This document shows, piece after piece, positions 7,263 to 45,938 of a stretch of DNA of 64,000 bases (positions are counted from its first letter, which is position 1; each line of letters opens with the position of its first letter). The position numbers were made by a program, and so were the translations under genes. The DNA lies in the IMG/VR virus record IMGVR_UViG_3300011934_000017, positions 124,001-188,000 of that record; one strand, written 5' to 3'. The notes under the pieces were generated by a model. The model was not told the DNA's origin and ran no database searches. It worked only from the letters and a program-made list of their open reading frames with translations.

Positions 7263-7931
7263 TCATTTCTCTTTTCGAATTAGCTCACGAGCGGCCGCTA
7301 CAAGATGTTTGCAAAGACCTGGCGCCATGGACGGGTTTGTTACTACGGGTGGTTCGCCGTTGCCGTACACAATACGACTAGCGCCATGTGCAGCATTGGC
7401 ATACTCAAACGTGAATACATAGGATTCACAACTGCAGGAGCATATAATCTTTCTATGTCGATTAATAGGCTTCTTAGCAGGATTGTTTTCTTTATCCAGC
7501 TCAGCACCTATGATGAAAGTGTTGTGCTTCCGTCGAACTTTGTTCGGTCTAAAAGGGTCGTTCGTTATTGCTACTGCTTTTAACGCAGGCAGTCCAGAAC
7601 GTGTTTTGGTGATCTTCTTTTCGTAAAGCTCAACGTCTTGCGAGTTGTTCACCATGAGTCTTGGTGTGCCACGCACAAGCTGGCGCAACGTCATACCTTT
7701 GCGAGACAAATCCGTTTCAGGTAACTGCTTTGGTGTCTTCGGATTCAGTCCTGATAGCTTGTAAGAATAGTTTGGACGACTCACTTTTGCTTTCTTTGGT
7801 TTTCTCGCTTTAGTCTTGCGTTCCATGTCAGAAGATTTAGACTTTCGCTTTGATGCTTCTACCTTTGCTTTGCTTGGTCGTCTGCTTTTGTTATTTTTGG
7901 ACAAAGGAAGCGCTTTGTGTTTCTTTTTCAT
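7263..7931 (-). CDS. SWIM-type Zn-finger protein with basic N-terminus
   Basis: CSCSCESY...LCKHL (CxC...CKH). Confidence 0.7.
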   Translation of the reverse strand: MKKKHKALPLSKNNKSRRPSKAKVEASKRKSKSSDMERKTKARKPKKAKVSRPNYSYKLSGLNPKTPKQLPETDLSRKGMTLRQLVRGTPRLMVNNSQDVELYEKKITKTRSGLPALKAVAITNDPFRPNKVRRKHNTFIIGAELDKENNPAKKPINRHRKIICSCSCESYVFTFEYANAAHGASRIVYGNGEPPVVTNPSMAPGLCKHLVAAARELIRKEK

Positions 7932-8005
7932 ATAAAACCTCCAGGTTGTCTCTCAAATTACAGAAGCAAAACGCCCTTAAAGTCGAGACATACTAGCTAT
8001 TTACG

Positions 8006-8668
8006 CTATTTGGTTTCAGATTCTTTTTCCACCAAACTGAGAAATTGTAGAATAGAGTCTCTGGACCAGTTGTCAAATGTTTTTCCTACGACCGTTCCAT
8101 CGTACTTGGTTTTTGGATCTAACTTGAACCAGAGAACTTCAATAAGCTCGTCCGTTTCTAAAAGGTCTTCATCTTCTCCTAGAAATTTCGAAGAAGGTCT
8201 TGTGTCTGATCTAACAGTTTCTTCGTGGAAGAGATTGCGCCAGCTTTTAGGTTCTGACTCTTCGAACACCATTTGCTGGCCGGTGTGTTCTACAAGCTTA
8301 GCTTTCGGTCCAATGATGTTACTCATATTTTCCATGATACGGGAAAACACCAGTAAATCCATAGAACTGAAATCATCATCTTTGATGCTGAGTGTGAAAG
8401 TTGCTAGCTTTGCAGTTTCCATCTTGCTCTCCTTAGAATATGGGGATTCTGGTTCAGGAATAGGAGTCTCAACAACATCGAGAATTTTAGACATAAAAAG
8501 CTCGTCCTGTTCACCGTGCAACCAAAGGTGAGAGTCTTCCTCTAGTTCCTCATGAAACGGCTCATAGAACCACTCTAATAAAACCCACTTCTTGAAAGGC
8601 TTTCTATGATTCATAGAGGTCAGTACCCAGTACCAACCTGGCTTTCTATTTTTGTCGTTTGTGTTCAT
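8006..8668 (-). CDS. hypothetical protein (possible internal start at 8422)
   Basis: 220-aa ORF; in-frame ATG at 8422 has SD AAGGAG. Confidence 0.65.
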   Translation of the reverse strand: MNTNDKNRKPGWYWVLTSMNHRKPFKKWVLLEWFYEPFHEELEEDSHLWLHGEQDELFMSKILDVVETPIPEPESPYSKESKMETAKLATFTLSIKDDDFSSMDLLVFSRIMENMSNIIGPKAKLVEHTGQQMVFEESEPKSWRNLFHEETVRSDTRPSSKFLGEDEDLLETDELIEVLWFKLDPKTKYDGTVVGKTFDNWSRDSILQFLSLVEKESETK

Positions 8669-9137
8669 TGATAACCTCGAAGGAGCGCTTAGTTATTTCT
8701 TGATGATGTTCCATCAACTCTTTTCGAACTTCTGTCAAAATGCGACCAAGATGATTTTGACCAGTGCCTTCTACTTTACCCCAGAATCTATCGCCATGAT
8801 TGTTTCCTTCTTCTAACACAGCAGGGTACGTACCGATCAGTGAAATAGATAGATCAGGATTCTGTTTAAATTTCATGCGTACAATATTTTTCATCACGCG
8901 AAGCTTAACGTCTTCCCAGTCTTCACGCATAACAACCTTGTATCCAAAATGCTTTGCTTGCTTGGGCGAAGTAGCTTCAGCGATCTTTCGTTTCATCTGC
9001 CTATCACCAGTCTTGGCTGCCTGATAGGCGTGTTCAGAAGTCGGATAAGTAATGCCCCTACGTTCAATAGGGGCTGCATAGAAGTTGCTGAGGAAAAAAT
9101 ACTTTCCTCGAAAGCGATCAATTAGAGTGACGGTCAT
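8646..9137 (-). CDS. NADAR (YbiA-like) family protein
   Basis: FLSNFY, SEHAYQAAK, W...K..VM....KF.QN, E....DRFWG, G.N.LG..L..VR. Confidence 0.93.
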   Translation of the reverse strand: MTVTLIDRFRGKYFFLSNFYAAPIERRGITYPTSEHAYQAAKTGDRQMKRKIAEATSPKQAKHFGYKVVMREDWEDVKLRVMKNIVRMKFKQNPDLSISLIGTYPAVLEEGNNHGDRFWGKVEGTGQNHLGRILTEVRKELMEHHQEITKRSFEVINEHKRQK

Positions 9138-18004: not shown

Positions 18005-19582
18005 TTACAGGGCGTCGTCAAAATCATCGAAGTCGTCTTCGTCTTCGTCTTCGTCTTCGTCTTCGTCTTCGTCTTCAAACTCTTCCTCGTCTTCTTCTAG
18101 GTCATCTTCGTCCTCGTCTTCAAATTCTTCTTCATCGTCTTCATCTTCAAACTCTTCCTCGTCGTCTGCTTCGTCCTCGTCTTCGTCCTCCTCTAGGTCA
18201 TCTTCAAATTCTTCTTCATCGTCGAGGTCCAGATCATCTTCTACCTCTTCTACCGTGTCTTCGATAATCTCCATGCGTACAACTTTTGCTAGATCAACCA
18301 GCTTGACCTCTTCAGTGTCGAGCACGAACAGAACAACTTTTGACTTGGCGTCGGAGAAGCCGATAACGAGGGCTTCACTGCCACGGTACTCAAGCTTGGT
18401 ACCAATGTCAACTTCATCGCCAAGCTTCGGCTCGATCACATCGTCAAAGTTTGCATCCCAGCCTTCGATGGCGCGCGCAATCTTTTTGGTGTCTAACGCA
18501 TCACCTACGATAGCTGCAATCTTTTCTAGGCGAGTATCGTCTTCAGTAGACGATTCTTCGGCTTCAGTCATTGCGGCCGCGTATGCCTCAATATCTTCTT
18601 CAGAGGCGTTGGTGGGCAACAGACCGATTTGAAGGGTCAGGCGTTCTTCGTTGTACATGCCGCCGGTAGTCGCTACGGTCAGGTCAAGACCTGTCAGGTC
18701 TTTCAAGATGTTGCCAATGTTGTCACGCACCGCGTCTTCAATCTTTTTAGTCATCGCATCGTTGAAAGTTGACACAGGCTTCAGCTTCTTGGTGTCACCG
18801 CTTGCGCCACGCTTGCGGCGCTTGATGCCAGAGCTTTCTTTATCTTCGGCAGCGGGCTGCTTGGGCTGCTTGGGTGCTTTCTTTTTGCTGTTCAAAAGTT
18901 CACGCAGCTCGGCGACTTTGACACCACGTGCTTCAGTGCGATCTTCGATCTTACCAGCATCGACCAGTGCTGTGATAAGCTCCTTGCGTGTCATCTTTTT
19001 CTCAGAAGACGCTGCAGGCTGCTTCGGCTGCTTAGGTGCTTTCTTTTTCGCGTGAAGTTCACGCAGTTCCTCGATGGACACGCCTTTGGCTACGCGACGG
19101 TTGCTAATCTTGCCAGCATCTACCAGCGCTGTAATCAGTTCTGTACGTGTCATCTTTTTCTCAGAAGAGGCAGCAGGCTGCTTCGGCTGACGTGGCTGCT
19201 TGGGCTTCTTCTTAGACAACTTTTCTACCATGCTGCGAAGTTCTGTGATGAGAATGCCTTTGGAGTCGGAGCGCTTTTCAAACTTCTTGGCTTCAACGAG
19301 GGCGGTGATGCAATCGCGGCGAGTCATCTTGCTTGCGTCATTTTTCATATCTTTATCTCCGGTTGTCTTGGGTGTAGTTGTCTTGGGTGCATCTTTTGCA
19401 GGGCTGTCGCCAAGCTGCACAAGACCACGTCCTTTCTTTTTCACGTCAGCGGCTTGCACAACGATGCCGCCTTTGGTCTTGTAAGATACGCGACCGACCT
19501 TTGCGATGCGATCTTTTGAATCGTCTGCCAGGGTGATGCTCATGCCTTCGAATGACTGGTCTGCTTTTTGACGTGTAGCCAT
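18005..19582 (-). CDS. repeat protein: three helix-loop-helix (HeH/Rho-N-like) units with PKQP linkers and an acidic tail
   Basis: KMTRxxxITALVxAxKxxxRxxxxGxxxxELR x3; ends DDFDDFDDAL; ATG at 19582 with SD GAGAG. Confidence 0.8.
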   Translation of the reverse strand: MATRQKADQSFEGMSITLADDSKDRIAKVGRVSYKTKGGIVVQAADVKKKGRGLVQLGDSPAKDAPKTTTPKTTGDKDMKNDASKMTRRDCITALVEAKKFEKRSDSKGILITELRSMVEKLSKKKPKQPRQPKQPAASSEKKMTRTELITALVDAGKISNRRVAKGVSIEELRELHAKKKAPKQPKQPAASSEKKMTRKELITALVDAGKIEDRTEARGVKVAELRELLNSKKKAPKQPKQPAAEDKESSGIKRRKRGASGDTKKLKPVSTFNDAMTKKIEDAVRDNIGNILKDLTGLDLTVATTGGMYNEERLTLQIGLLPTNASEEDIEAYAAAMTEAEESSTEDDTRLEKIAAIVGDALDTKKIARAIEGWDANFDDVIEPKLGDEVDIGTKLEYRGSEALVIGFSDAKSKVVLFVLDTEEVKLVDLAKVVRMEIIEDTVEEVEDDLDLDDEEEFEDDLEEDEDEDEADDEEEFEDEDDEEEFEDEDEDDLEEDEEEFEDEDEDEDEDEDEDDFDDFDDAL

Positions 19583-19617
19583 GATGATATCTCTCTCTGT
19601 ATTTGCTTGCTTAAATT

Positions 19618-19709
19618 GAACGTTAACTAGCACCGTAACCAAATTTCTATCTGCTCGTTTTGGCTCGCTGCTACATCTTCATTATATCACATCTACAACC
19701 GCTCTGCAA
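19618..19709 (-). promoter_or_regulatory. sigma70-type promoter plus 28-bp element, copy 2
   Basis: TTGCAG-17-TATAAT (19686-19681); element 19645-19618. Confidence 0.85.
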
Positions 19710-19797
19710 CAACTTTCTGCTGTGGTGGTGTGAGGTGTGCTGTGGTGCAGTCGAATCAAAGATTGCACGGTGAGGGGGCGCTGCCCCCTCTGGTATA

Positions 19798-20169
19798 TCA
19801 GCTTTCTAGTTCGCGTACGGTCTGTGCCACGTAGCTGTCTTCTCCGAGCAAGGTCGCTAATCTTTTCGCCAGCGCTACATGACCAGGAAAATCTTTCCAG
19901 GACTTGGTGCGACCCTCAAAGACCACATCAACGTAGGATGCCAGCGCTGAAAAGTTCTTGCGCTTGTGGCCATGCAGAGAAAAGACTTGCAGGTACGGAC
20001 CAGATACTTGGCTGTGGTTTTCGATCATTTCGAAAATGTAGCCTCGGTCCTCAACGATGATAACGTGGGTGTGCTCACCCTGATCATCAACGTCTTCCAG
20101 TTCAAACTTTTCACCGCCCTGTGCTACCAGTGCTTCTTCCATTGCTAAGATGTCGGCTAGCTGAGTCAT
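19798..20169 (-). CDS. early protein, paralog family member A
   Basis: GGEKFELE.D..G...VI / AL...VD....KSW...HVALA.RL. Confidence 0.8.
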   Translation of the reverse strand: MTQLADILAMEEALVAQGGEKFELEDVDDQGEHTHVIIVEDRGYIFEMIENHSQVSGPYLQVFSLHGHKRKNFSALASYVDVVFEGRTKSWKDFPGHVALAKRLATLLGEDSYVAQTVRELES

Positions 20170-20200
20170 GATGTTGCCTCTTCAATTTACAGTTTAGGTT

Positions 20201-20292
20201 GAACGTTAACAAGCGCCGTAACCAAATTGCGCTGCTCTCGTTTTTGCTTGGTCTTACATCTTCATTATATCACATCTGAGACCACACCACAA
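20201..20292 (-). promoter_or_regulatory. sigma70-type promoter plus 28-bp element, copy 3
   Basis: TTGTGG-17-TATAAT (20269-20264); element 20228-20201. Confidence 0.85.
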
Positions 20293-20319
20293 CGACTTTC
20301 TGCTGTGGTGTGGTGCGTA

Positions 20320-20694
20320 TTAGCGCATGTGGAGCGCTTCTTTTGCCTCGGGTACAAAATTCGCATCAGGAGCAAACTCTACCAGGCGTACAACTAGAGC
20401 CACGTGGGTGCTAGATTCTACCCACGACTTGATGCCGGGTAGCTGTGCTGGTGAGGCCCAGAGAAGATCAAGTGCCGACACCAATGAGTCAATATCATCA
20501 TAGGCATCCGTCAGTTTAAAAGTTCGTATTCTCTGGCTGTCACCGTCTGCGGACGATTCGAACAACACCGCACTGCCGTCTTTCGGAAGCAGGATCACGG
20601 CAGTATAATCACCGGTCTGATCTGGGCATTCTAGTTCGAACCGCTCACCGCCGATCTGAAGCAGTGCGTTTTCCATAGCTGTCATGAAATGCAT
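20320..20694 (-). CDS. early protein, paralog family member B
   Basis: GGERFELE.PD..G.YT.VI / LD..W...KSW...HVALV.RL. Confidence 0.8.
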   Translation of the reverse strand: MHFMTAMENALLQIGGERFELECPDQTGDYTAVILLPKDGSAVLFESSADGDSQRIRTFKLTDAYDDIDSLVSALDLLWASPAQLPGIKSWVESSTHVALVVRLVEFAPDANFVPEAKEALHMR

Positions 20695-20701
20695 GTTGTC
20701 A

Positions 20702-20798
20702 CCTCTACAAACTTTACAAGGCAGCGAACATCAACAAACGCCGTAACCAAGTTCTGCTGTGCTCGCTGAGGGGTTGGTACTACATCTTCATTATATCA
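20702..20798. repeat. 97-bp perfect direct repeat, copy 1 (RBS, 28-bp element and extended -10 promoter; promoter copy 4)
   Basis: Identical to 23922-24018; element 20753-20726, -10 at 20795-20790. Confidence 0.95.
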
Positions 20799-20825
20799 CG
20801 TCAGGAGTCAAAAGAACAGCATTTT

Positions 20826-21155
20826 CTATGAGGCGGTCTTTACAATGCTTGGTATGCTCGATTCGGGTACGATTTCTGCTAGACGTTGGGCTAACTTGAC
20901 GTGGATGGGACAGTCTAACCAGCAGCGCTTACCACTGTTTTTTGACCCCCAGAAAAGATCGACGTGCCAGGCCAGTGCTTCGAAATTGCTTCGGGATGTG
21001 GCTGCATCTTTTAAAAAGATCACCTCTTGAACGCTACAATCATCAAAATAGGTACAAGCTGTAGCTCTACCTTGACTGGCTTCTAACATGACCACGATGC
21101 AAAAATCGGAATCAATCTGCTCAAGGGCGAATCTTTCAAGGTGGTTAACGGGCAT
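20826..21155 (-). CDS. early protein, paralog family member C
   Basis: ERFALE...D / FEALA.HVD.FW...CW.D.P.HVKLA.RL. Confidence 0.75.
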   Translation of the reverse strand: MPVNHLERFALEQIDSDFCIVVMLEASQGRATACTYFDDCSVQEVIFLKDAATSRSNFEALAWHVDLFWGSKNSGKRCWLDCPIHVKLAQRLAEIVPESSIPSIVKTAS

Positions 21156-23464: not shown

Positions 23465-23914
23465 TTAGAAACAGTTCTTGATTGCGCCCATCACTTCAGG
23501 CAAGCGACCAGTAACAAGCGAACTTTCGTACATGAATTTCGGCTGAGCACCGTTGAACACATCGTGCTCGGTGTTTTCATCTTCAATGAAGGCTAGGTAC
23601 ATATCGCTGTTGACAGAACTCTGGCCAACAGGCAAGCGACCGTGCTTGATGTTGAAGGTACCAGGCTCAACTTCTGCACCGAGCATGACAACGACTCGGC
23701 GACGATCAATAAGACCAATACTGAATCCTTCTGCAAACTCTGTATCGTGTAGTTTCACCGAAGCCACGTCCTGTTCAGACACACCAGAAAGGTCATGTGC
23801 AAACTTCGCAAGCTCGCGGCAGGCAGAAATCGAACCGGCTTTCATATCTTCACCGAGGCGTGAAATAACAGACCAGATAATACCGAGACCAGAAATTTTA
23901 TCGTATGCGTACAT
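23465..23914 (-). CDS. hypothetical early protein
   Basis: Directly behind repeat copy 2 (RBS GAGG). Confidence 0.75.
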   Translation of the reverse strand: MYAYDKISGLGIIWSVISRLGEDMKAGSISACRELAKFAHDLSGVSEQDVASVKLHDTEFAEGFSIGLIDRRRVVVMLGAEVEPGTFNIKHGRLPVGQSSVNSDMYLAFIEDENTEHDVFNGAQPKFMYESSLVTGRLPEVMGAIKNCF

Positions 23915-23921
23915 GATATAT

Positions 23922-24018
23922 CCTCTACAAACTTTACAAGGCAGCGAACATCAACAAACGCCGTAACCAAGTTCTGCTGTGCTCGCTGAGGGGTTGGTAC
24001 TACATCTTCATTATATCA
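23922..24018. repeat. 97-bp perfect direct repeat, copy 2 (promoter copy 5; -35 TTGTAT at 24038-24033)
   Basis: Identical to 20702-20798. Confidence 0.95.
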
Positions 24019-24038
24019 TACCCAGCACCTGAATACAA

Positions 24039-24314
24039 CTACTGAAGCAGGAGCTCAAGATCAGCTAGGCTGGTACCTAGAATAGCATCCTCAGAGAAAG
24101 TTGAAATAAGCCGTGCGTTATACCAATGAGCGCTGGGATGCTCGTTAGGTATCTTACGACACATCTGCGCCATTACGTACATGGCAAAGTGCGGGTATTC
24201 GTATGCTGAATAGCTTTCAGGATTATCCGGCATCTTCATACCCGAGTTGGAAGCTGCTTGAGCCAGACTGCGAATATCCATGAGGGCGTTGAAGTCTTCG
24301 GTACGCTTATTCAT
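24039..24314 (-). CDS. hypothetical protein
   Basis: ATG at 24314 with SD GGAG. Confidence 0.7.
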   Translation of the reverse strand: MNKRTEDFNALMDIRSLAQAASNSGMKMPDNPESYSAYEYPHFAMYVMAQMCRKIPNEHPSAHWYNARLISTFSEDAILGTSLADLELLLQ

Positions 24315-24631: not shown

Positions 24632-24967
24632 TTATACGGAAAAGATTACGTCGTACTTGGAGAGGAGAACAGGTCCCAATTCCCAGACGTAAGCATCATA
24701 CAGGAAGTCATTGTCTTCCTGCTTGCTCCAAGTTTCTTGCTTCTCGATCCAGTCGATCATCTGATCCACAGTATCAAAGAAGGCAGCGTGAATATTCCCC
24801 CAGCCACAAGGCCACGCTTTCTTGCGATACACGCAGGCATACACAGCGGTGTCTGGCCAGATATGCCCATGAAGATCGTGGTCTTCAATGTGCGACTGAA
24901 GGGCCGATACAAACTTTTCAGGTGCAGTTGAAAATACGGTACCGGGCTGCTGAATGATGTAGGGCAT
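24632..24967 (-). CDS. hypothetical early protein
   Basis: SD GGAG; first gene behind promoter copy 6. Confidence 0.7.
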   Translation of the reverse strand: MPYIIQQPGTVFSTAPEKFVSALQSHIEDHDLHGHIWPDTAVYACVYRKKAWPCGWGNIHAAFFDTVDQMIDWIEKQETWSKQEDNDFLYDAYVWELGPVLLSKYDVIFSV

Positions 24968-24988
24968 GATGTTTCTCCAAGATACAAG

Positions 24989-25080
24989 GAACGTTAACTA
25001 ACGCCGTAACCAAATTGCGTTACGCTCGTTAGGGGCAGGTGCTACATCTTCATTATATCACAATTTAAGCTGTCCTACAA
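24989..25080 (-). promoter_or_regulatory. sigma70-type promoter plus 28-bp element, copy 6
   Basis: TTGTAG-17-TATAAT (25057-25052); element 25016-24989. Confidence 0.85.
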
Positions 25081-25106
25081 GGACTCTAATTGCTGAGGAG
25101 AATACT

Positions 25107-25583
25107 ATGCATTTCTACGATGAAATTCAAAAGAACAAACCACGCAAGGTCGAGGTAGAAAAAGCACCGACCGACGTTTTGATTCTGAAGCGGGAGTACA
25201 TGCGCGAAGGCACACACGGTACGTTTATCTTTCCCGACGGCAGCAAGCTAGACACTCTGGAGCTTCCGTGGAACGATAACAAGCAACGGGTGTCCTGCAT
25301 TCCCGAAGGAAAGTATAAGCTGAGAAAGCGTTACTCTCCTGTCGTGAAGCGATCTTCTGGAAATGAGTTCGCTAACGGGTGGGAAGTAACAAACGTAGAG
25401 AACAGGACCTACATCATGATTCACCCTGGAAACTACGTGCGCAACTTCTTAGGTTGTATTGGTGTTGGGTTGAGTAAAGGTTTCCAAGGCAACTCACCTG
25501 TCATCTGGAACAGCCGTGCAGCTTTTCGCAAGTTCATGGCTAAGATGAAAGTTCACGAAGAGTGGACGCTTATCGTAGAGTAA
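25107..25583 (+). CDS. DUF5675 family protein (putative L,D-transpeptidase-fold cell-wall enzyme)
   Basis: R......T.G......TLELPW.DN....SCIPEG.Y...R.YI.IHPGN......GCI.VG. Confidence 0.85.
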   Translation: MHFYDEIQKNKPRKVEVEKAPTDVLILKREYMREGTHGTFIFPDGSKLDTLELPWNDNKQRVSCIPEGKYKLRKRYSPVVKRSSGNEFANGWEVTNVENRTYIMIHPGNYVRNFLGCIGVGLSKGFQGNSPVIWNSRAAFRKFMAKMKVHEEWTLIVE

Positions 25584-30710: not shown

Positions 30711-30784
30711 AAACGTTAACTAAGTCCGTAACCAAGTTTAAAAGTTCTCTATAATGGAGCTGTCTTGCTTTTACAGTATATCAC
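30711..30784 (-). promoter_or_regulatory. extended -10 promoter (GTGATATACT) plus 28-bp element, copy 7
   Basis: -10 at 30780-30775; element 30738-30711; -35 not evident. Confidence 0.75.
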
Positions 30785-30804
30785 GTTTAGAAAGAAAAAG
30801 ATAG

Positions 30805-35230: not shown

Positions 35231-35252
35231 TAAAAACACACAGTTCAGACAC

Positions 35253-35280
35253 AAAAAAGGCCGCATTTGCGGCCTTTTTT
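35253..35280. terminator. bidirectional terminator
   Basis: AAAAAAGGCCGCA-TT-TGCGGCCTTTTTT. Confidence 0.9.
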
Positions 35281-35306
35281 GTGTCTATGGTAAATGCTTA
35301 GAAGAT

Positions 35307-37087: not shown

Positions 37088-37172
37088 GGGGACCCTCCAT
37101 AGGTATATAGCGCAAATTACTAAACGAAGGTCTGATAATTTCAATTACATGCTAGAGTCTCAGGAGAATGAC

Positions 37173-38327
37173 ATGGCTAGAATACGCAGAGGTACGGGAG
37201 GCAAGCTCCGTAAAAATGCAAAGAACTTTACGCACAAACAAGCGCAAGCACGTTTGCAAGAAACGGTAGCACCCTTTAACAAACAGGTAGATAACTCGCT
37301 ACGAGTAAATGCTGTAGAGATTGATTATTACCAGACACAAAACAAAATAGGCAGACCATGTACTTGCGACAAGATACAAATATATGATGAACAAAAGACG
37401 CGAGACGGTGGCAGCAATTCAAATCATATAGAACCAGTTGTACCTACCGTAGACGAAGACAGTAGCTCAAGATTAGATATTGAGCTTCAGGACGACAATC
37501 TGTTTGGTGATGGGCCTGCTGAAAAGCTGTACGGTGAAAACGTATATGATGTTAGTGGTTCCGACAATCTGAAAGACGACGATATTCCTGACGAAATATA
37601 TCGAAACATGTTGGCAGGCGAAGGCGACGTAGCCATGTCTGAAACCTCCATGTTCGGTTCAAATGCTAACTGTGGAATATGCTATCGTGTAGGTTTCCAG
37701 CCGGGGTACAAGTCATACGGCAAACAGCGTACATTGTTGACCACGTGGGACATTAAAGACATAAGCAGTTATAATGTTGTCACGACCGAGACACCTAATA
37801 AGATGCGGCGTCAAGGCCCCAAAACAGACTACACGTTTGTTGAGTTCACCTTGTTCGTTCCGAAGTATTTCAAGTCTTGTATTTTCAGCATTCGAAACAA
37901 CACACAGATTCTACAAGGTGAGCGGATTCGAGCGTTTAACCAACCGCTGACTTTGAAAACGTTGAAAGACAATGCAGGCAAAGAAATTGTGGTTCGAGTG
38001 GATGCGTTGGAGTTCACGCATATTGTTGTCGAGTTTGATCTAGGTGTTCAAAAGACATATGCCAATCTAGGACCAGAAAGCCAAGCGCTTGACTATTCCA
38101 AGATGGATGCGCTTTCAAACTTTCCTTTAGTTCTTCCTCCTTCTATTCACGAGGTCAATACAGGTGATGTTATAGTCATCAAAGACCGAAAACTGGTACT
38201 AAAAATCATAGACCTGGAGAGAAAGATAACAGCAGATAAGAGGCAATTAGAATGGACAGTTCAAACTCGACTAATCCAAAAAACAGAACCCTTGAGAGAC
38301 ATTGCGAAGGGCATGAAGATTCTGTAG
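37173..38327 (+). CDS. probable virion/structural protein
   Basis: SD CAGGAG before ATG 37173; CTC and CGIC..VGF..GY motifs; beta-rich C-terminus; function is inference. Confidence 0.7.
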   Translation: MARIRRGTGGKLRKNAKNFTHKQAQARLQETVAPFNKQVDNSLRVNAVEIDYYQTQNKIGRPCTCDKIQIYDEQKTRDGGSNSNHIEPVVPTVDEDSSSRLDIELQDDNLFGDGPAEKLYGENVYDVSGSDNLKDDDIPDEIYRNMLAGEGDVAMSETSMFGSNANCGICYRVGFQPGYKSYGKQRTLLTTWDIKDISSYNVVTTETPNKMRRQGPKTDYTFVEFTLFVPKYFKSCIFSIRNNTQILQGERIRAFNQPLTLKTLKDNAGKEIVVRVDALEFTHIVVEFDLGVQKTYANLGPESQALDYSKMDALSNFPLVLPPSIHEVNTGDVIVIKDRKLVLKIIDLERKITADKRQLEWTVQTRLIQKTEPLRDIAKGMKIL

Positions 38328-39742
38328 GAAGAAAGAATTACATTGTCACCGTAAAAAGAAATGTCGTCAAAGAAGACGTGCTGGATGAATTACAGCGCCC
38401 AGAATGCGGATGCGTCCATCGAAGCGTCGAAGTAACCGACTTCCAATCGTTGAGCAGAAGGAATTTCACAGTAGCTTTGACTGTGGAAGAGCGGGATATC
38501 CTGAGAGAAAGCGACAATGTGGTTGATGTTGTTTTGGAAGAAGGCTTCAATAGAATGAAGCCTGTGCTTGAAGAGCAACTGATTAATCCTGCTTTTGAGA
38601 ATAGCGCTTCAAGCACCCACGACAACTGGGCTCTGGATCATTGTGCGTTTCGAAACGGATACAAGTACATTTACTCGCACACCGGAAAGAACGTAGACAT
38701 AATCTTCATTGACTCAGGTGTGGACCCTAATCACTCTGAGTTCGAACAGAACGGTGTATCCAGAGTCCGCGTTATTGAATGGGAAGCTGGACAGTTCAGC
38801 ACTAAGCCAGATCAATACGTAGACACGGAGGGTCATGGGACTGGTGTGTCTAGCTGTGGTGTAGGCAAAAGACAAGGCTTCGCAAAAGACAGTGACATAT
38901 ATAGCATAAAGATTTTTGATAATGATGCCTACAGCCCGTTAAAAGCGTTGCAGCTTGCGCGTACTTGGCACAATCAAAAGACGAACGGTCGTCCTACCAT
39001 AGTGAACAATAGCTGGGGATATTCAGCGGAGTATCCACCTGGGCATCCTAAAGCAGGACAAAAGCATCCTGTTCAAGTAGCTGTGATAGATGCTGAAATC
39101 GAATCCATGATAGACGCGGGCATTATAGTAGTAAGCGCAGCAGGAAATGAAAATCACCACGTAGCCGCAGAAGGCACTGCCGAATACGATGATTTTTACT
39201 ACACAGACAGCAGCGGTAACTACACCGAAATTATGGAGGATGCTGCATACTTTGATAGGAACAATCGATACACGCCGGGCGGTTCTGCCGAGACGATATG
39301 CGTTGGTTCAATAGGTGAGTTCTATCCTACTTCCAGATTCATAAGGTCATGGTTTTCTAATTTTGGAAGTAGGGTAGACATATTTGCTCCAGGACGTGTG
39401 ATTCAGTGTGCTCAGTCCTTAACAACAAACGATCTAAAGAAAACCAATGGTACTTCTTTTTCTTCCGGCATTCTGAGCGGTATAATTGCGCTTTGGTTAG
39501 AGATAAACCCGACTGCGAATCAAATGGATGTTAGAAAATGGCTGAGTAGGCATGCCTTTTCAAGCGAGGTCGTAGGCAGTTTAGAAGGTGCAGAAAATCA
39601 AACAGCCAGAGTATTGTTCAACGGTGTCAGAGCAGCTAAAGACACTCCTCATACAATACTGTTGAAGCAAGGTAATCAATGGTATCCAGTACAACATATA
39701 ACCAGCAATAAACGAGCCGTATATGGCAGGAGAATTTCATGA
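38252..39742 (+). CDS. subtilisin-like S8 serine protease
   Basis: Triad motifs IFIDSGV (D), GHGT (H), NGTSFS (S); oxyanion AAGNE; I9-like NYIVTVK prodomain. Confidence 0.9.
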   Translation: MDSSNSTNPKNRTLERHCEGHEDSVGRKNYIVTVKRNVVKEDVLDELQRPECGCVHRSVEVTDFQSLSRRNFTVALTVEERDILRESDNVVDVVLEEGFNRMKPVLEEQLINPAFENSASSTHDNWALDHCAFRNGYKYIYSHTGKNVDIIFIDSGVDPNHSEFEQNGVSRVRVIEWEAGQFSTKPDQYVDTEGHGTGVSSCGVGKRQGFAKDSDIYSIKIFDNDAYSPLKALQLARTWHNQKTNGRPTIVNNSWGYSAEYPPGHPKAGQKHPVQVAVIDAEIESMIDAGIIVVSAAGNENHHVAAEGTAEYDDFYYTDSSGNYTEIMEDAAYFDRNNRYTPGGSAETICVGSIGEFYPTSRFIRSWFSNFGSRVDIFAPGRVIQCAQSLTTNDLKKTNGTSFSSGILSGIIALWLEINPTANQMDVRKWLSRHAFSSEVVGSLEGAENQTARVLFNGVRAAKDTPHTILLKQGNQWYPVQHITSNKRAVYGRRIS

Positions 39743-40356
39743 ACGACAAGAGCCTAGAAATTTCAAAGAACATGGTAGTATTAGCACGTCGTCGCAAAGG
39801 TAAAGGAAAGAAGCGTGGTTCAGCGCGTAGCCAGATGCTAAAGATGGTCATGCCTATGCTTTCCCGTGAACATGGAGAGAAACTAGCAGAAGCTATCGAA
39901 CACAATAACGTAAGTCTGCTACGCCGCACATGGGATTCAATTAAACATGATCTATCGGAAAAGCTGGCGAATGAAGCTACTGCCAGCGACTTTGCTTCTG
40001 AAGTCCAAGAAATCTTTGATAAAGTCTTTAAAGACCTTGAAGAAGAGTTTCTTTCACAATCAGCGTCTAAGAACAGAGGACGTTTGTTAACAGGCACCGC
40101 GCGTATTCCCTCTTTGACTCGTGATCTAATTGCAGATGGTTATGTTGAATTTACCGATGCAAAAAATAACGTCTATACTGTGACTATCACGCAGCTTGGT
40201 GTTAAGAAAGTTGGAAATCCTCAACCAATAATCTATGCAGGCGCTTTAATTACCTCTGATTCCGGAATGAAAGAAGGTATATCTGCTTCTGGAATTTATG
40301 CTGACGTTTGTTCGGAGATTATTATTTCTGCTATGTCGCTGTCAGAAAACGATTAA
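39739..40356 (+). CDS. hypothetical protein
   Basis: ATGA-coupled to the protease gene. Confidence 0.75.
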   Translation: MNDKSLEISKNMVVLARRRKGKGKKRGSARSQMLKMVMPMLSREHGEKLAEAIEHNNVSLLRRTWDSIKHDLSEKLANEATASDFASEVQEIFDKVFKDLEEEFLSQSASKNRGRLLTGTARIPSLTRDLIADGYVEFTDAKNNVYTVTITQLGVKKVGNPQPIIYAGALITSDSGMKEGISASGIYADVCSEIIISAMSLSEND

Positions 40357-40372
40357 ACCTACCGAAACCTCT

Positions 40373-40400
40373 AAAAAGGGCGGCAAATGCTGCCTTTTTT
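40373..40400 (+). terminator. intrinsic terminator
   Basis: AAAAAGGGCGGC-AAAT-GCTGCC-TTTTTT. Confidence 0.75.
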
Positions 40401-41360
40401 CGTGTCTGAAGCGTGACGCTGAAACATCAAATGTAACAGAGTGTTAACCATGCAAAAGCACTCTACAGGGCTGTTTGAAAGCATTGGGGGCGTCATCCAT
40501 GCAAAACCAATGCTTTTGCATGTCTGTAAGCAAAATACCTTGTTACAATTCGTTACAAAAAAGTTTTGTGTGGAAGAAATGCGTTTTTAGACCGTTTGGA
40601 GCCTCTGTCCTGTTAAAAAACGTCAAAATATCAACCTTGTTTTTTAGACGCCTTAAAATCAGGCTAAAAATCACTCATTTTTAACGATTTCCTCAAAACC
40701 AAAAAGTGTCAATACGCAGTATTGGCGCAGATTGCGTTGAGCAGCAAAGCGTGAAGAGCTAAGCGAGGCGCAGCCGAGCATTAGCGATGATGCTTGAGTA
40801 ATGCCTCAGCAAACAAGAGACGCTAGGCGGCGCGAACACTTAGAGCCCGTCTCGTCCAGAAGCGTTGAGCGCAGCGAATAAGCGAAGGGGTTCCAAGCGA
40901 AGCGTTAAGCGTTCCAAGCGCTGCGAGGCAGCGCGATAGCAACGAGCGTAGCGAGTTGCTTAAAAGAACCTATCCTACGCGATCCTACGACTGATTCATT
41001 TAAAGAACGTTAAGCAATTAAAAATTGCATTCTTTTGGATCATGTTAAAACAGGCCGAACTCTGTCTTTGCTAAGACCATAGCAGACCTTAAAACAAGGT
41101 GAATTAATAGGACGTGTGGAATTAAATGAGCCAGTCGTAGGACTGCGTAGTGTTGTATAATGTTAAAGGTCCAACTCGCTACGCTCGTCGTCCCTAACGC
41201 TGCTTCGCAGCGTTTCTCTAATCCTTTCCGCTTCGCGGTACCGCGGGCTAACGCCCGCTCTCGCTCACTTCGTTCGCTCACCTTAAAAAACCTAATTTGT
41301 CAGTTCAAAAATCAAAGTCTTTTCAAGACAAACTTTTTAAATGAAAAACTTTTGTTGCGC
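40401..41360. other. about 1-kb non-coding region, candidate replication origin
   Basis: A/T tracts, then a purine-rich GCGAAGC/GAGCG flank, an AT-rich core and a mirror pyrimidine-rich hairpin flank; 17-bp inverted repeat 40942-40958 / 41172-41188. Confidence 0.5.
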
Positions 41361-41368
41361 GCTTTAAG

Positions 41369-41376
41369 TGTAAATA
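41369..41376 (+). promoter_or_regulatory. TGTAAATA motif upstream of the modification operon
   Basis: 33 nt before ATG 41410. Confidence 0.6.
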
Positions 41377-41409
41377 TTGAACAGATTATATGGAAAACCG
41401 GAGATTACG

Positions 41410-42885
41410 ATGGGAAAACAGTTACCCGAAGAGCTAAGGTATCAGCTTCTTGTTTTCGACTATAAGAAAGCTAACAAGGCACGCAAGCTCTGGAAAAAAC
41501 GTAAAGGAGATAAGGATAAAGAAGCCCATAAAAAGTTTTGCTATGGATTAGGAGCAAAGCTAGACGTTTCTCCGAAAGTAGTTAGCTTCATCGTCAAAAA
41601 CAATAAATGGGCAGATCAAAAGCCCGCAGAGCATGTAAAATCATTACCAACAGGCCTTCAAGAATACGATAAACCTTCTTTGAAGCCTGAAGCCTTAGTC
41701 AGAGGAAGAGAATTATACATATCTCCTAAAAACTGGCGCAGGCTCAACGAGCATTACACCAAAGGAAAAATAAAGAAAGCTATTGTTCGCGCTGTTAGAA
41801 AGCTAGATTTACCTGCACCTGTTCAACCTATAAGCCAAGAGCAAGCAGATGATAGCTTTCGAGCACTGAAAAAGTTGCGTTCTGACAGCATGATAAAACG
41901 TATGCCTACCTGCACACGGTGGGATTATAAATACGGTATTTCCGACGTTGTTATTGACGCACCTCGAACAGGAAACGAATGCTCAAACTTTTATCATCAG
42001 GAGTCACGTTGGTGGTGCGACTATCAGAGTATTCCGTCACCGATGAAAGTATGGAATTCTGATCTTCACATGTATTCCATGATGAATGCTTTATGGACGT
42101 TGAAGTTTAAGAAGATTACAGGACCAGAGCTTCGCACAGCTATAAGTGTCCGTAAATATGTGGCTAGTCAGTTTAAACCTTCTGCCGCCAAAGCGTTTTA
42201 CGAGCTATTTGACTGCAAGCACGTTTACGATCCTTCCAGTGGCTGGGGAGACCGTCTAGCAGGCTTCATGGCAGCTAAATGCACCAAGTCCTATTGCTCT
42301 ACGGATCCCAACAGCAGACTGTACGACGACTATGAATTGCAGAAAAATCGGTACGGTGGAAAGAAAGAAATAAACATGTACTGTCACGGTAGTGAAATCA
42401 AAGGTGGTGTTCGCAAGATGTACGGACACAGAGTTGATACTGTCTTTACTTCGCCTCCTTATTTCAATGCCGAACGCTACAGCGAAGACGAAGGCCAAAG
42501 CTTTAGGCAGTTTGATGAAATAAGTGCGTGGCGTGAAAATTTCCTGTTTCCTTCTTTGAAAAATGCGTGGAATGCTTTGACTTCAGAAGGTGAACGCGGT
42601 GGCATTCTAGCAATCAATATTTCGGACATATACAACTCTTCGGATAAAACTCGCGGTGAGATATGCGACCCTATGAACGATTACATATCTTCGCTGAAAG
42701 GTGCTCGATACATCGGTTGTATTGGTTTGCGTCTAGCTAAACGTCCTGAGAGCGGTGCACTTGAAGGTAAACAAGGTGCAAGTATCGAACCTATCTGGGT
42801 CTGGGCTAAAGGTGGCTCTTGGGAGCTAGACGATTATATAGATAACGGATTTAAGACTAAGAAAGTAAAAGGTCTTTGGGGATAA
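41410..42885 (+). CDS. DNA amino-methyltransferase (N4-C/N6-A type)
   Basis: FKPS.AK, SAM motif YDPSSGWGDRL, catalytic FTSPPYF; SD GGAG before ATG 41410. Confidence 0.85.
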   Translation: MGKQLPEELRYQLLVFDYKKANKARKLWKKRKGDKDKEAHKKFCYGLGAKLDVSPKVVSFIVKNNKWADQKPAEHVKSLPTGLQEYDKPSLKPEALVRGRELYISPKNWRRLNEHYTKGKIKKAIVRAVRKLDLPAPVQPISQEQADDSFRALKKLRSDSMIKRMPTCTRWDYKYGISDVVIDAPRTGNECSNFYHQESRWWCDYQSIPSPMKVWNSDLHMYSMMNALWTLKFKKITGPELRTAISVRKYVASQFKPSAAKAFYELFDCKHVYDPSSGWGDRLAGFMAAKCTKSYCSTDPNSRLYDDYELQKNRYGGKKEINMYCHGSEIKGGVRKMYGHRVDTVFTSPPYFNAERYSEDEGQSFRQFDEISAWRENFLFPSLKNAWNALTSEGERGGILAINISDIYNSSDKTRGEICDPMNDYISSLKGARYIGCIGLRLAKRPESGALEGKQGASIEPIWVWAKGGSWELDDYIDNGFKTKKVKGLWG

Positions 42886-42886
42886 T

Positions 42887-43597
42887 ATGGCACATATCAT
42901 TGAAGCAAACAGTATCGACAGTCTTTGGTATCGTACTATGAATACCTTACTGACTGAAGGCGATAAGATTAGCGGTATTCAAGAAATTCCTAATCTGATC
43001 TTGGTTCTTAAAAAGAATTTTCGATCCTCTGAGTTTTTCGATAAAGAGTTTCGTCGTATTTTTGGAGACGAACGAATAGACTTTGCATCTTCTGTAACGT
43101 TTGTTCCTCCGAAAGAAGGCATGGTAAGTCCTTCATACGAACAGAATGAGCCCAAAGCTAAGTGGACGAAAACTTACTGGGGTCGTATGATCAGTTTTGA
43201 CGGAAGTGTTAATCAGATTGAGGAAGCAATCAAAAAGCTTTCTAAAGGTAAGAATACCAAGATGATTTCTATAGGTATTTATGCGCCTTCTTCCGATCAT
43301 CGCAAAGTCATGGGTGGTGTGCCTTGTATGACTGCTATCGATATAAAGCCTAGAAATGGAAAGATTGATCTATCTGTTTTCATGAGGTCTATGCGATTCT
43401 CTAAGTCGGGTTATGGAGACGTTCATGCCTTGTGTGAACTAGGTAAATATATCTGTGAGCGCTCTAACATGGAAATGAACAGCCTCACCATGTTTGCGAC
43501 CTCTGGACACACTTTTTACTCTGGTGAAGAGTTTACAAACTGTAAAGCTCTTATGGAATCAATGAAAGAACGCAAAGCAGAGAAGGTAAGAATATGA
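42887..43597 (+). CDS. thymidylate-synthase-fold nucleotide-modifying enzyme (atypical)
   Basis: YWGRM...NQI, VPC (nucleophile Cys), RNGKI...FMRS, final D eleven residues after R, GHTFY. Confidence 0.75.
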   Translation: MAHIIEANSIDSLWYRTMNTLLTEGDKISGIQEIPNLILVLKKNFRSSEFFDKEFRRIFGDERIDFASSVTFVPPKEGMVSPSYEQNEPKAKWTKTYWGRMISFDGSVNQIEEAIKKLSKGKNTKMISIGIYAPSSDHRKVMGGVPCMTAIDIKPRNGKIDLSVFMRSMRFSKSGYGDVHALCELGKYICERSNMEMNSLTMFATSGHTFYSGEEFTNCKALMESMKERKAEKVRI

Positions 43598-44409
43598 AGC
43601 TCAGCCTTAATAATCCAGTTGAAACCCATCGTATTGGCAAATACGAAGTCTTTGTCAAGCGTGATGATATGATGGGTGATAATAAAATTCTTCCACCTTG
43701 GGGAAAGATGGACGCCATTGATAGTATTCTTCAAAGAATGGATCTTAGCGTACCTCTTATACAACTGAATGTCTTTGGTTCTTGGAGTGGTTGGGCACTC
43801 GCACGTCTCGCTAAAAAGTATGATTGCGAAGTACATGTGGTTCATCCTAAGACGAAGAAAATCACTGACGACTATATAGGTGTGATGGAAGAAGCAGGTG
43901 CTATCATTCATCCTATTCGACATAATATGATGCGCGTTTTGTACGCTCAGACGAACAACAGGGCGAAAGAAGAAGGTATGAGAATGCTGCCGTATGCATT
44001 CAACACACCGAAATATCTAAACGCTATGGCAAGACGTTTACGCGCTACTTTAGAAGAGCTGGGTCCCATAGATAACTTGGTGGTAAGCTCTGGTAGTGGT
44101 GTGACTGTTACGGGACTGTCTAAACCTTTTCTTGATCTAAATCCTAAAGGTCAAGTCTACACTGTTTGCGTTTCGTCCGAAAATTCGATTCGTAAAACGT
44201 TTAACAGTCGTGAAGTCAGCACTGATCCTGTTCACATTATCAAGTCACCGTATGAGTTTGGTGATACGATGCCTAAAGTTGAAGTTCCTTTCTCTTGTAA
44301 TCAGTTTTGGGATAAGAAAGCTTGGCATTGGTTGACGGAGAACAAGAGCATTCTTAAAGGTAAGCGTACACTGTTCTGGAATCTAGGTGGTGAGTATACA
44401 TTTTTGTGA
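43594..44409 (+). CDS. PLP-dependent fold-type II enzyme (ACC deaminase/D-Cys desulfhydrase-like)
   Basis: VFVKRDD...WGK, VVSSGSGVT..GL, LFWNLGG. Confidence 0.8.
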   Translation: MKLSLNNPVETHRIGKYEVFVKRDDMMGDNKILPPWGKMDAIDSILQRMDLSVPLIQLNVFGSWSGWALARLAKKYDCEVHVVHPKTKKITDDYIGVMEEAGAIIHPIRHNMMRVLYAQTNNRAKEEGMRMLPYAFNTPKYLNAMARRLRATLEELGPIDNLVVSSGSGVTVTGLSKPFLDLNPKGQVYTVCVSSENSIRKTFNSREVSTDPVHIIKSPYEFGDTMPKVEVPFSCNQFWDKKAWHWLTENKSILKGKRTLFWNLGGEYTFL

Positions 44410-44420
44410 GGATTGAATAA

Positions 44421-45263
44421 ATGGGCAAGCCGAAAGTTAAAGAATGTTTGATACGTAACCTGGAAAGATATGACGGACCTTTTGCTGTTCTTCTGTCGGG
44501 TGGTGCAGACAGTCACGCTAATCTTTTCGCATTACTTGAGATGGGCGCAGACGTACACGTATATAGCTGCACCTTAGAAGACAGGGAAAGCAGGGATTTT
44601 ATTTGTGCTCGCAGGACTGCTGAAATCTTTGATCTACCTTTCACACCTGTTATTTTACCTACAGACCTCGACCAGCTCCTTGTAGATATTCGAGAGAACA
44701 TGAGTCTTATCGGAACAAAAGGCAAGGTAGAGGTAGAAGCTTTATGGGCGTTTCGTAAAGCCGTTGATATTATAACAGAACCTAGTATCGTCAGCGGTCT
44801 GTCAGCAGGTATGTATTTTTGTTTGACCAAGAAAGGCAGCATACACTACGCACATACAGGAAGAATCGACGAATATCGTAGAGAGACATTTAAAAGAGCC
44901 TCTAATCCTAATAATCAAGGGGCCAAGATGAAACGATATTCGAAAAGCGTTGGAAAGAAGTGGATAAATCCTTGGATAACCCGAGGAATGCTAAAGACGT
45001 TCTTAGGAACTACATGGGAAGATGTAAATAAACCACGACAAAAAGAAGCGATCCGCGCAGACTTTGAAAAATACTTTGCAAAAACCAAAGTGTTTAATCA
45101 ACGAGACATGCACAAAGGTGATAGCGGTATGTCTGAGCTATTCGCTAAATTGTTGGAAGACCCTAAGGTAAATGTTAGGAATCATAAATCTGTTGTTGGT
45201 ATCTACAATATGATACGAGCAGAAGAGCTGGCCAGAGTAAATAAAGGCCCTGGCTTGTTCTAG
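44421..45263 (+). CDS. asparagine-synthetase C-terminal-like PP-loop ATP pyrophosphatase (no glutaminase domain)
   Basis: AVLLSGGADS, D...AR..A..F.L, VSG.SAG, NPW, KE..R..F. Confidence 0.8.
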   Translation: MGKPKVKECLIRNLERYDGPFAVLLSGGADSHANLFALLEMGADVHVYSCTLEDRESRDFICARRTAEIFDLPFTPVILPTDLDQLLVDIRENMSLIGTKGKVEVEALWAFRKAVDIITEPSIVSGLSAGMYFCLTKKGSIHYAHTGRIDEYRRETFKRASNPNNQGAKMKRYSKSVGKKWINPWITRGMLKTFLGTTWEDVNKPRQKEAIRADFEKYFAKTKVFNQRDMHKGDSGMSELFAKLLEDPKVNVRNHKSVVGIYNMIRAEELARVNKGPGLF

Positions 45264-45275
45264 TCGGAGAATGCA

Positions 45276-45938
45276 ATGCTTACTTTCCAACATTTAGATA
45301 AACTCACCATAAACGAATTTTTTGAAAGCGACTTGTTTTTTGAGTTGCACTCTCTGTCTGGTATGAGCATATTTAGCGGTAGTACGGAAACAGTAAAAGA
45401 GAAATTGCTAGATTCTGTACACAACCAACAAGAAAAGGTTTCACACAACCTCGTATGTTCGAATGGAAAACCTGTTGGTTTCTTTTCTTTGAAGACGCAC
45501 AGTACCTACTTTTACTACGACACCTTTACAGATACAGTAGAAGACTTAGGTAATGCGGTAGAGTTTTCTAGTTGGTTTGTTTCTAGTAGCTATAAAAATC
45601 TAGTTTCTCCTACCGCCGCTATAATGAGAAAAAGCTTAGAAATGGCAAGTGACATTGGACGCATTGCTGTGTTTGGTGTGCGAGCACAGTATTACGAAGA
45701 CGGTACTCCAATGTTTCTTTCTGCGAATAGAGATTGTTGGAGTCACGAACCGCGACCAGACTACAATATATCTAATGGGCCTAAAAACTTGTCTGTGACG
45801 CATCCTTCTTTTCATCCTGATTCTTTTGGTATTTTAAAAGCTGCTCACCTGTTTGGCTTTAATATGTTTGGTTTAGATGCTTACGACGGGAGTCCTAAAT
45901 ATCGCAAGTTTCTTTCTTCAATGAAATCTGTTGAATGA
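45276..45938 (+). CDS. GNAT-like protein
   Basis: NGKPVGFFSL...EFSSWFVSSSYK...IMRKSLEMA follows GNAT strand/helix order; weak. Confidence 0.45.
   Translation: MLTFQHLDKLTINEFFESDLFFELHSLSGMSIFSGSTETVKEKLLDSVHNQQEKVSHNLVCSNGKPVGFFSLKTHSTYFYYDTFTDTVEDLGNAVEFSSWFVSSSYKNLVSPTAAIMRKSLEMASDIGRIAVFGVRAQYYEDGTPMFLSANRDCWSHEPRPDYNISNGPKNLSVTHPSFHPDSFGILKAAHLFGFNMFGLDAYDGSPKYRKFLSSMKSVE

Follow-up and report, generated by a model that had tools for sequence, protein, structure and literature searches.

What does the largest non-coding gap in a jumbo phage genome do, and is it a replication origin, as its sequence alone had suggested? The gap lies in a 64,000-nucleotide stretch (hereafter, the window) spanning bases 124,001-188,000 of a 220,237-bp IMG/VR phage record that has a 3,172-bp terminal repeat. 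The same DNA is found in two stromatolite metagenome runs, as contigs only, and its nearest cultured relatives are the PaBG/Lu11 group of jumbo phages, with 43% amino acid identity to PaBG in a gp157-like protein encoded next to the gap. An earlier sequence-only reading described an AT-rich core between a purine-rich flank and a pyrimidine-rich flank, each carrying GCGAAGC mini-hairpins, and proposed a bidirectional origin with one priming site per strand, with a packaging site or a non-coding RNA (ncRNA) as the alternative. Here, we find that the observation holds in every particular, while the interpretation is only partly supported: the gap contains a self-pairing non-coding element of roughly 600 bases, kept at the same position in a clade of PaBG-like jumbo phages, that looks more like a new large structured RNA gene than a DNA replication origin, although neither has been tested at the bench.

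An imperfect palindrome in a large non-coding gap

The gap runs from 40357 to 41409 (1053 nt) and is the largest in the window; by a crude ORF map it is also the largest in the whole genome, the next largest being 737 nt. No open frame across it exceeds 84 codons, apart from one 104-codon frame that runs into the next gene. All features described from sequence alone are present and far beyond chance. GCGAAGC occurs on the + strand at 40897 and on the - strand at 41202 and 41230, or three times in 1.05 kb against a genome rate of 0.15 per kb. A perfect 17-bp inverted repeat joins 40942-40958 to 41172-41188, and ATCCTACG occurs twice, 10 nt apart, at 40972-40979 and 40982-40989, with an inverted copy at 41135-41143. 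The left flank is 61% purine and the right flank 31% purine, the core (41004-41121) is 36% GC and an A/T-tract zone (40555-40705) is 33% GC, against about 44% for the genome, and gene orientation switches at 34166/34250.

Three further properties had been missed. First, the 17-bp repeat is one segment of a nested series of inverted repeats (40975-41003/41122-41150, 40942-40958/41172-41188, 40916-40933/41198-41215, 40897-40909/41224-41236 and 40866-40885/41261-41280), so that the two flanks are the arms (40860-41003 and 41122-41282) of a single imperfect hairpin of about 420 nt around a 118-nt AT-rich spacer, with an RNA-fold z of -10. This is the only long-range inverted repeat in the genome. 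Second, the 250-nt segment starting at 40705 has the highest AGCG/CGCT density in the genome, 16 against a mean of 1.9 (sd 1.5). Third, AGCG-N1-2-AGCG doublets occur 16 times genome-wide, and 5 of these lie in the gap. The left arm carries the AGCG repeats, doublets at 40868, 40896 and 40945, the GCGAAGC at 40897 and the ATCCTACG direct repeat, while the right arm contains a hairpin we term H6 (41196-41214) and further hairpins at 41227-41237 and 41243-41258. A TATAAT hexamer on the + strand at 41156-41161, at a poorly matched stretch of the arm alignment, has no -35 partner, was not reported by a sigma-70 promoter scan, and has no known function.

The palindrome's form raises the possibility of a packaging (pac) site, a mobile palindromic element (MITE) or an invertible promoter switch: repeat arrays flanking a centre recall the P1 pac site, imperfect palindromes of this size are typical of MITEs, and inverted repeats flank the TATAAT hexamer. 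We consider these readings, even taken together, the least likely. Dispersed copies, which would mark a MITE, were sought and not found: there is a single copy in the genome, an exact composite pattern scan of a collection of genome contigs found none, and syntenic inheritance across a clade (below) argues against mobility. Both orientations of the core, as predicted for an invertible switch, were likewise not seen; contigs from two samples are identical and show one orientation, with no variants, joints or inversions, and no recombinase was found among the neighbouring genes scanned. As for packaging, the record's terminal repeat lies about 55 kb away, and in PaBG the large terminase is gene 108 while the gap lies between genes 159 and 160 (PMC7412058), which leaves a pac site neither supported nor excluded; the physical genome ends were not determined. 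A family of minus-strand promoter-leader units in this genome does not extend into the gap.

Tests of a replication origin

The element sits within the replication module: genes for topoisomerase II subunits, a Cas4-like nuclease, a DnaG-type primase, a RuvC-like resolvase (as annotated in PaBG) and a clamp loader all lie within about 15 kb. In a DNA-level origin, arrays of short repeats (AGCG doublets, TCCTACG, GTTACA) would bind an initiator on both sides of an AT-rich unwinding core, and replication would start there bidirectionally. The AT-rich core and A/T tracts fit this model, and the repeats are mirror-oriented here and in PaBG. The motif GAGCG-N1-2-AGCGA is also almost confined to the syntenic gap, with 4 of 5 genome-wide matches in PaBG, 4 of 4 in Lu11 and 1 of 2 in HRDY3. 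As evidence for an iteron array these repeats leave the matter undecided, because the units are only 9-12 nt long, no binding protein is known, and the AT-rich relatives (the contig labelled L004, phage NCTB and the Erwinia phage; below) lack the doublets.

Nothing found here shows replication starting at the element. Whole-genome GC skew, proposed in advance as a check on the origin model, turns elsewhere: the cumulative minimum is at genome position 157,864 (window 33,864), 6.5 kb to the left, where minus-strand and plus-strand gene blocks diverge beside the primase gene, and skew is positive and similar on both sides of the element (+0.10 against +0.12-0.14). Since phage skew mostly follows transcription, this is a weak test, and as the data consist of assembled contigs, no read-depth gradient was measured. 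The gap contains no DnaA boxes. No initiator gene could be recognized next to it: the flanking proteins (the gp157-like protein, an S8 peptidase, a 205-aa protein and a 491-aa methylase-like protein) match no initiator family in Pfam or PHROGs. The gp157-like protein got no function from either database, and additionally gave nothing against PDB sequences or the ESM Atlas; its structure was not predicted. Finally, the d(GCGAAGC) heptamer is not what is conserved at the right-arm hairpin, where loops in relatives read UUC, UCU, UCC or GGA. We regard a DNA-level origin as a live but unlikely rival.

Synteny and sequence homology in related phages

A gap of 0.5-1.5 kb follows the same block of genes (Cas4-like on the - strand, primase on the + strand, three or four minus-strand genes, and gp157-like on the + strand) in Pseudomonas phages PaBG (1,477 nt, record 116,153-117,629), Lu11 (about 750 nt, covered only by two tiny annotated ORFs) and HRDY3 (630 nt), in phage NCTB (about 720 nt, with the record start lying in a 37-nt poly(A) run), in the Erwinia Alexandravirus pEa_SNUABM_3 (about 490 nt), and in 12 metagenomic contigs. 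The latter include the IMG/VR contig behind L004 (759 nt) and a closer set found by searching with the gp157-like protein, which returned 63 homologues. The contigs of this closer set (labelled L049, L050, L052-L057 and L060-L062; 58-87% amino acid identity) all carry a gap of 0.8-1.35 kb at the same place. In contrast, relatives found through the downstream 491-aa protein (L005, L017-L031) have a different gene order and no gap there. GCGAAGC/GCTTCGC is the top shared non-AT 7-mer in the syntenic gaps of five phages, but the distant relatives PaBG, Lu11 and HRDY3, while sharing motifs, fold only slightly better than shuffles (z about -1.5 to -1.7). A BLAST search of the gap against INPHARED phages found no match. 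The exact 17-mer gave 10 IMG/VR hits, about what chance predicts; three copies in promoter regions of Klebsiella phage May and the repeats of a sequence labelled L016 were examined and set aside as not homologous. A pattern built on the 5' block found only the TARA-like contig again.

In the closer relatives the gap DNA is homologous to ours, with identities of 86% in L049, whose contig ends inside the palindrome, 75% in L050 and 72% in L052. They share the same layout: an invariant 5' motif, AAAGTGTCAAYRC, a purine-rich half full of AGCG repeats, a conserved core, TGTTAAA...TCTGTCTT, and a pyrimidine-rich 3' block. In more detail, ordered blocks run across 9-12 sequences, beginning with GTTACA repeats and an A tract, then CAAAAAGTGTCAAYRC...TTGGCG(C/A)AG...GC(A/T)GCAA, hairpins H3 and H4, AGCG arrays, TGTTAAA...TCTGTCTT, a triloop hairpin, CCGCTCTCG.TCGCT.CGCTCACC, and a weak or strong terminator followed by the late promoter of the next gene. 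A purine-rich 5' part and a pyrimidine-rich 3' end appear in all 11 elements compared.

In our copy, the left half of the gap (40429-40572) contains conserved TGTAAC/GTTACA hexamer repeats and then GTTACA-N5-GTTACAAAAAAGTTTT, a protein-binding or promoter-like zone. The same block occurs in L049, L050, L052, L055 and L060, and BLAST finds 27 nt at 89% identity to L049 and L050. Zones comparable to the A/T-tract zone at 40555-40705 precede the element in PaBG, and NCTB and L004 carry poly(A) runs of 37 and 29 nt at the same place. The core contains the conserved block TGTTAAA...CTCTGTCTT at 41044-41076, with 71% identity to L050 over 40988-41086. The 3' block, CCGCTCTCG..TCGCT.CGCTCACC at 41254-41283, is conserved and has a look-alike in PaBG.

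Conserved base pairing

Several helices keep their pairing while their sequences change. Helix H1 (40709-40723, + strand), CAATAC-gca-GTATTG, pairs 6 of 6 in 12 of 12 relatives; L053 and L054 carry the double compensatory form CAACGC/GCGTTG, and L055 and L057 carry G·U intermediates on the + strand that would be A·C mismatches on the other strand. Helix H4 (40819-40856, + strand) consists of a 4-bp outer stem, an asymmetric internal loop, a 7-bp inner stem and an 11-nt loop that reads GAGAGTCCGTA in L050, L055 and L057. The same shape appears in seven homologous segments, in which 96% of cells pair and 7 of 11 pairs change on both sides; 0 of 500 shuffles reach this, and slid controls pair only 26-49%. 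H6 recurs as a triloop hairpin with different stems in L052, L053, L054, L055 and L057. Between H1 and H4, a local hairpin, H3 (40763-40810, + strand; GAGGC...GAGCAT-tagcg-ATGATGCTT...GCCTC), is present in the MFE and centroid folds and is nearly identical in sequence in L049, L050 and L052, though we did not test it for covariation.

At longer range, nearly every relative's MFE fold pairs the AGCG segment with the CGCT segment, over 290-520 nt. In ours and in 9 of the 10 folded relatives (not L056) the fold also closes the core with a helix of unrelated sequence: TCCTACGACTG in ours, ACTTCCCCAGATC in L050, AGCTCCTCCG in L054 and CAACGACTGGCTC in L060. All 11 elements fold better than dinucleotide shuffles on both strands (z = -2.6 to -14). 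The covariation nonetheless rests on 7-12 related sequences, and alignments outside the short helices are poor: RNAalifold on the whole divergent alignment recovers only short helices, and the giant palindrome is not recovered column by column. The gaps of all roughly 60 homologous contigs and of the 66 INPHARED relatives were not aligned with a structure-aware aligner or tested with R-scape. Fold energies also do not pick a strand, with + better in 8 of 11 elements, and in our copy G:T and A:C mismatches between the arms number 10 against 8; the lack of strand bias in fold energy counts in favour of a DNA-level origin. On the other hand, helices whose sequences change while pairing is kept, with 11-nt loops and 118-225-nt spacers, are not what a duplex-binding site or an extruded cruciform predicts, and the pattern fits an ncRNA better than a double-stranded origin.

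Transcription signals and non-coding status

The phage has a late-type promoter motif, aaa[CG]TGTAAATA, with 30 copies in the genome, most of them 30-90 nt upstream of gene starts. One canonical copy, GTGTAAATA, lies at 41368-41376 (+ strand), before the downstream gene whose ATG is at 41410. The element itself begins with AAAAAGTGTCAATA (40701-40714, + strand), which differs from the motif by one base; GTGTCAA within it is invariant in 12 of 12 close relatives and present in PaBG. Lu11, HRDY3, NCTB and L004 carry the canonical CTGTAAATA motif at the matching place, 370-600 nt before the next gene, and it is annotated as a promoter in Lu11; counting ours and PaBG, a late-type motif lies inside the gap 370-700 nt before the next gene. 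The variant, GTGTCAATA, is not used upstream of any other gene in our genome. It also overlaps the 5' arm of H1, so that if the motif is a -10 element H1 cannot be in the RNA, an overlap we did not resolve. Upstream, a bidirectional intrinsic terminator at 40376-40400, with a G+C stem, an A run before it and a T run after it, closes the + strand operon at 37149-40356; a terminator scan reports its minus-strand reading, and it is related to a palindrome at 35247-35286.

At the 3' side, our copy has only a weak hairpin followed by a T run (AGTCTTttcAAGAC aaaCTTTTT, 41316-41340, + strand), a possible transcript end that falls below the scan's threshold. L062 has a strong terminator, GCGGCCtcgGGCCGC-TTTTTT, at the matching place, and L053, L054, L056 and L057 have weaker ones. 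Taken together, these signals do not settle whether the element has its own promoter and terminator. Nor was a transcript looked at directly, although RNA-seq had been suggested beforehand as a test for an ncRNA, as no RNA data exist for this phage and the only runs that contain it are DNA contigs. Non-coding status is supported by the short frames and by the minus-strand ORFs called over the element in L052 and L054, which are unrelated to each other. No Rfam family (GOLLD, ROOL, OLE, riboswitches, CRISPR repeats and others) matches by covariance-model search at the gathering score, in our region (where nothing appeared even at E up to 10, apart from two chance-level hits) or in 120 kb of sequence from 10 relatives.

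These signals bear on two further readings. The gap could be a long regulatory 5' leader or operator array, in which repeats bind a phage regulator that times expression of the downstream operon, with no independent RNA function. Clusters of short repeats are typical of operators, and in Lu11, HRDY3, NCTB and L004 the internal late-type motif is the only one found in the gap before the next gene. However, our phage and several relatives have a second, canonical promoter right before the downstream gene, L062 has a strong terminator between the element and that gene, and the downstream genes differ between phages while the element stays, making this reading improbable. Alternatively, a purine-rich transcript from the internal promoter could stay hybridized to its template and prime leading-strand synthesis, as at ColE1 RNA II or T4 oriF/oriG, in which case both the structured RNA and the origin reading would be true. 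A purine-rich segment (55-65% purine) follows a promoter-type motif in all relatives, its size and many helices recall RNA II, and it lies next to primase, RuvC-like resolvase and topoisomerase genes. The evidence for such an R-loop origin is purely circumstantial: there is no skew signal, the purine bias is modest, and no RNase H site or hybrid can be inferred from sequence. We hold it as a doubtful possibility, somewhat less likely than a DNA-level origin.

Discussion

The anatomy recognized from sequence alone is real and conserved, and the element is thus functional. We propose, at a confidence no better than even, that the gap encodes a structured ncRNA of about 580-640 nt, read left to right on the + strand from roughly 40705 to 41290/41340, which would represent a new family conserved in PaBG/Lu11-like jumbo phages. 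In this model, transcription starts at or just upstream of AAAAAGTGTCAATA, the 5' third forms H1, H3 and H4, and the purine-rich AGCG-repeat segment pairs over a long range with the pyrimidine-rich 3' segment to enclose an AT-rich core domain with the conserved sequence UGUUAAA...UCUGUCUU, with the transcript ending before the separate late promoter at 41368. Our analysis demonstrates synteny (in the cultured phages above, L004 and 10 closer contigs), sequence homology, pairing conserved through compensatory changes, non-coding status and absence from Rfam; that the element is transcribed, where the RNA begins and ends, and what it does are inferences. Our guess at function is a protein-binding scaffold that acts in DNA replication or DNA metabolism, based on the repeated (G)AGCG-N1-2-AGCG(A) and GAA/UUC-triloop motifs and on the element's fixed place inside the replication gene module.

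Helices kept by compensatory change, conserved loop and core sequences, a fixed polarity and promoter-type boundaries are the signature of a structured RNA, while the place in the replication module, the repeat arrays and the AT-rich zones keep an origin alive. A more speculative and unlikely combination is that the element is a new class of large structured phage RNA that also serves as the replication-origin primer, with a purine-rich late-promoter transcript forming an R-loop at the AT-rich core; this would be the first mapped origin mechanism for the clade. Large structured RNAs with no known function are rare and are prized as windows on new RNA biochemistry, and this candidate is conserved across cultured jumbo phages with tractable hosts, including PaBG on P. 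aeruginosa PAO1, Lu11 on P. putida, and the Erwinia and Dickeya phages. If the element is instead the origin, it would be the first located in this clade, whose published genome description mentions no replication origin, GC skew or such intergenic element (PMC7412058). Either way, it marks a conserved cis element that current annotations leave blank or cover with spurious small ORFs, such as Lu11 gp130/gp131 and the minus-strand calls in L052 and L054.

Comparison with known systems

The closest known systems are the large structured ncRNAs of phages and prophages, GOLLD and ROOL, which are established Rfam families. Like these, the element is several hundred nucleotides long and phage-borne, with many helices kept by covariation, no coding capacity and no known function. 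It differs in that it matches no Rfam model in sequence or structure, lies in the replication module of PaBG-like jumbo phages rather than beside tRNA genes, and has an architecture dominated by one long purine/pyrimidine pairing with AGCG repeats; its expression has not been shown. With ColE1 RNA II and the promoter-plus-unwinding-element origins T4 oriF/oriG, it shares a promoter feeding a structured, purine-biased transcript of about 0.5 kb beside an AT-rich zone near replication genes, as inferred here, but there is no evidence of hybrid formation, processing or initiation at this place, no antisense partner was seen, and GC skew gives no signal.

Palindromic origins of eukaryotic DNA viruses, such as the SV40 core origin with its GAGGC pentamers and HSV oriL/oriS, similarly have short repeats in mirror orientation on both sides of an AT-rich centre. 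Those palindromes are short and bind a known initiator, whereas here the spacer is 118 nt, the helices covary in sequence, and no initiator is recognizable. Finally, the shared GCGAAGC/GCTTCGC 7-mer recalls d(GCGAAGC) mini-hairpins and the primosome or primase hairpin sites of phage G4 and phiX174 type. In the element, however, the heptamer arises from adjacent AAGCG units and the loop of the conserved right-arm hairpin varies, and these phages have double-stranded genomes with DnaG-type primases.

Expression signals and repeats

The minus strand of the window carries seven copies of a promoter-plus-leader unit, at window positions 2310-2504, 19552-19746, 20141-20331, 20664-20871, 23893-24074, 24932-25116 and, as a partial copy, 30712-30792. 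The unit comprises a sigma-70-like TTGnnn-N17-TGATATAATGAAGATGTA, followed by a purine-rich leader and then the conserved TTGGTTACGGCG..GTTAACGTTC just before the ribosome-binding site, and it looks like an early-gene expression cassette with a shared leader element. We also identify a phage-specific promoter motif, aaa[CG]TGTAAATA, at 30 sites genome-wide (for example, window 34179 on the plus strand, 34203 on the minus strand, and 41368 and 52387 on the plus strand), mostly 30-90 nt upstream of gene starts. The same motif is annotated as a putative middle/late promoter in phage Lu11. In addition, a 40-bp near-perfect palindrome lies between the primase gene and the convergent gene (window 35247-35286), and is similar in sequence to the terminator at the start of the non-coding gap (window 40373-40410), so it appears to be a reused bidirectional terminator.

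The left half of the gap, upstream of the structured element, contains conserved TGTAAC/GTTACA hexamer repeats and GTTACA-N5-GTTACAAAAAAGTTTT (window 40429-40572). These are found in the gaps of the metagenomic relatives L049, L050, L052, L055 and L060, and could be binding sites for a regulator or an initiator. The AT-rich relatives carry poly(A) runs in the syntenic gap, of 29 nt in the IMG/VR contig L004 (L004:6825-6853) and 37 nt in phage NCTB (LT598654.1). The NCTB record begins inside its run, which is probably an assembly break rather than a physical end. The contig of the closest relative, L049, stops (L049:8168) exactly where the left arm of the palindrome ends, as expected if the inverted repeat breaks short-read assembly. 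In our phage, the terminal repeat is 3,172 bp (genome 1-3172 = 217066-220237), with tandem repeats of about 99 bp at its inner boundary (genome 3005-3286). While the physical ends were not confirmed here, this repeat is too long to be a k-mer overlap artefact.

Gene content around the gap

Window 41410-45938 encodes a gene cluster that looks like thymidine hypermodification, comprising a 491-aa methylase-like protein, a thymidylate-synthase-like protein, a PLP-dependent enzyme and an Asn-synthase/QueC-like protein. The cluster is shared at 52-63% aa identity, in a different order, with a 277-kb phage (L005/L017), and relatives carry other DNA-modification genes at this spot, such as C5 methylases, some with inteins, and TAGT. 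On the other side, a subtilisin-like S8 peptidase gene (window 38252-39742) sits between the gp157-like gene and the gap; it is present in most close relatives but absent from L055, from a further metagenomic relative, L057, from L060 and from PaBG.

Similar sequences in other phages

The window's 17-mer ACGAGCGTAGCGAGTTG, or a close variant of it, recurs three times in Klebsiella phage May (MG428991.1: 69077-69098, 23942-23963 and 116592-116619), upstream of the sliding-clamp and baseplate genes, with each copy followed by ATTAATATA-like sequence. It looks like a May-specific regulatory motif, and the match to our phage is at chance level for the size of the collection. A second case is the IMG/VR record L016 (IMGVR_UViG_638275427_000001), which over positions 500-8800 carries many copies of a palindromic repeat of about 250 nt, with pyrimidine-rich CTCGCTACGCTCG arrays on the left, a conserved core (TGTAAATTTCGAGTCTCAAAATCC...), and purine-rich arrays on the right. 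This repeat looks like a MITE, has the opposite polarity to our element, and is unrelated in origin.
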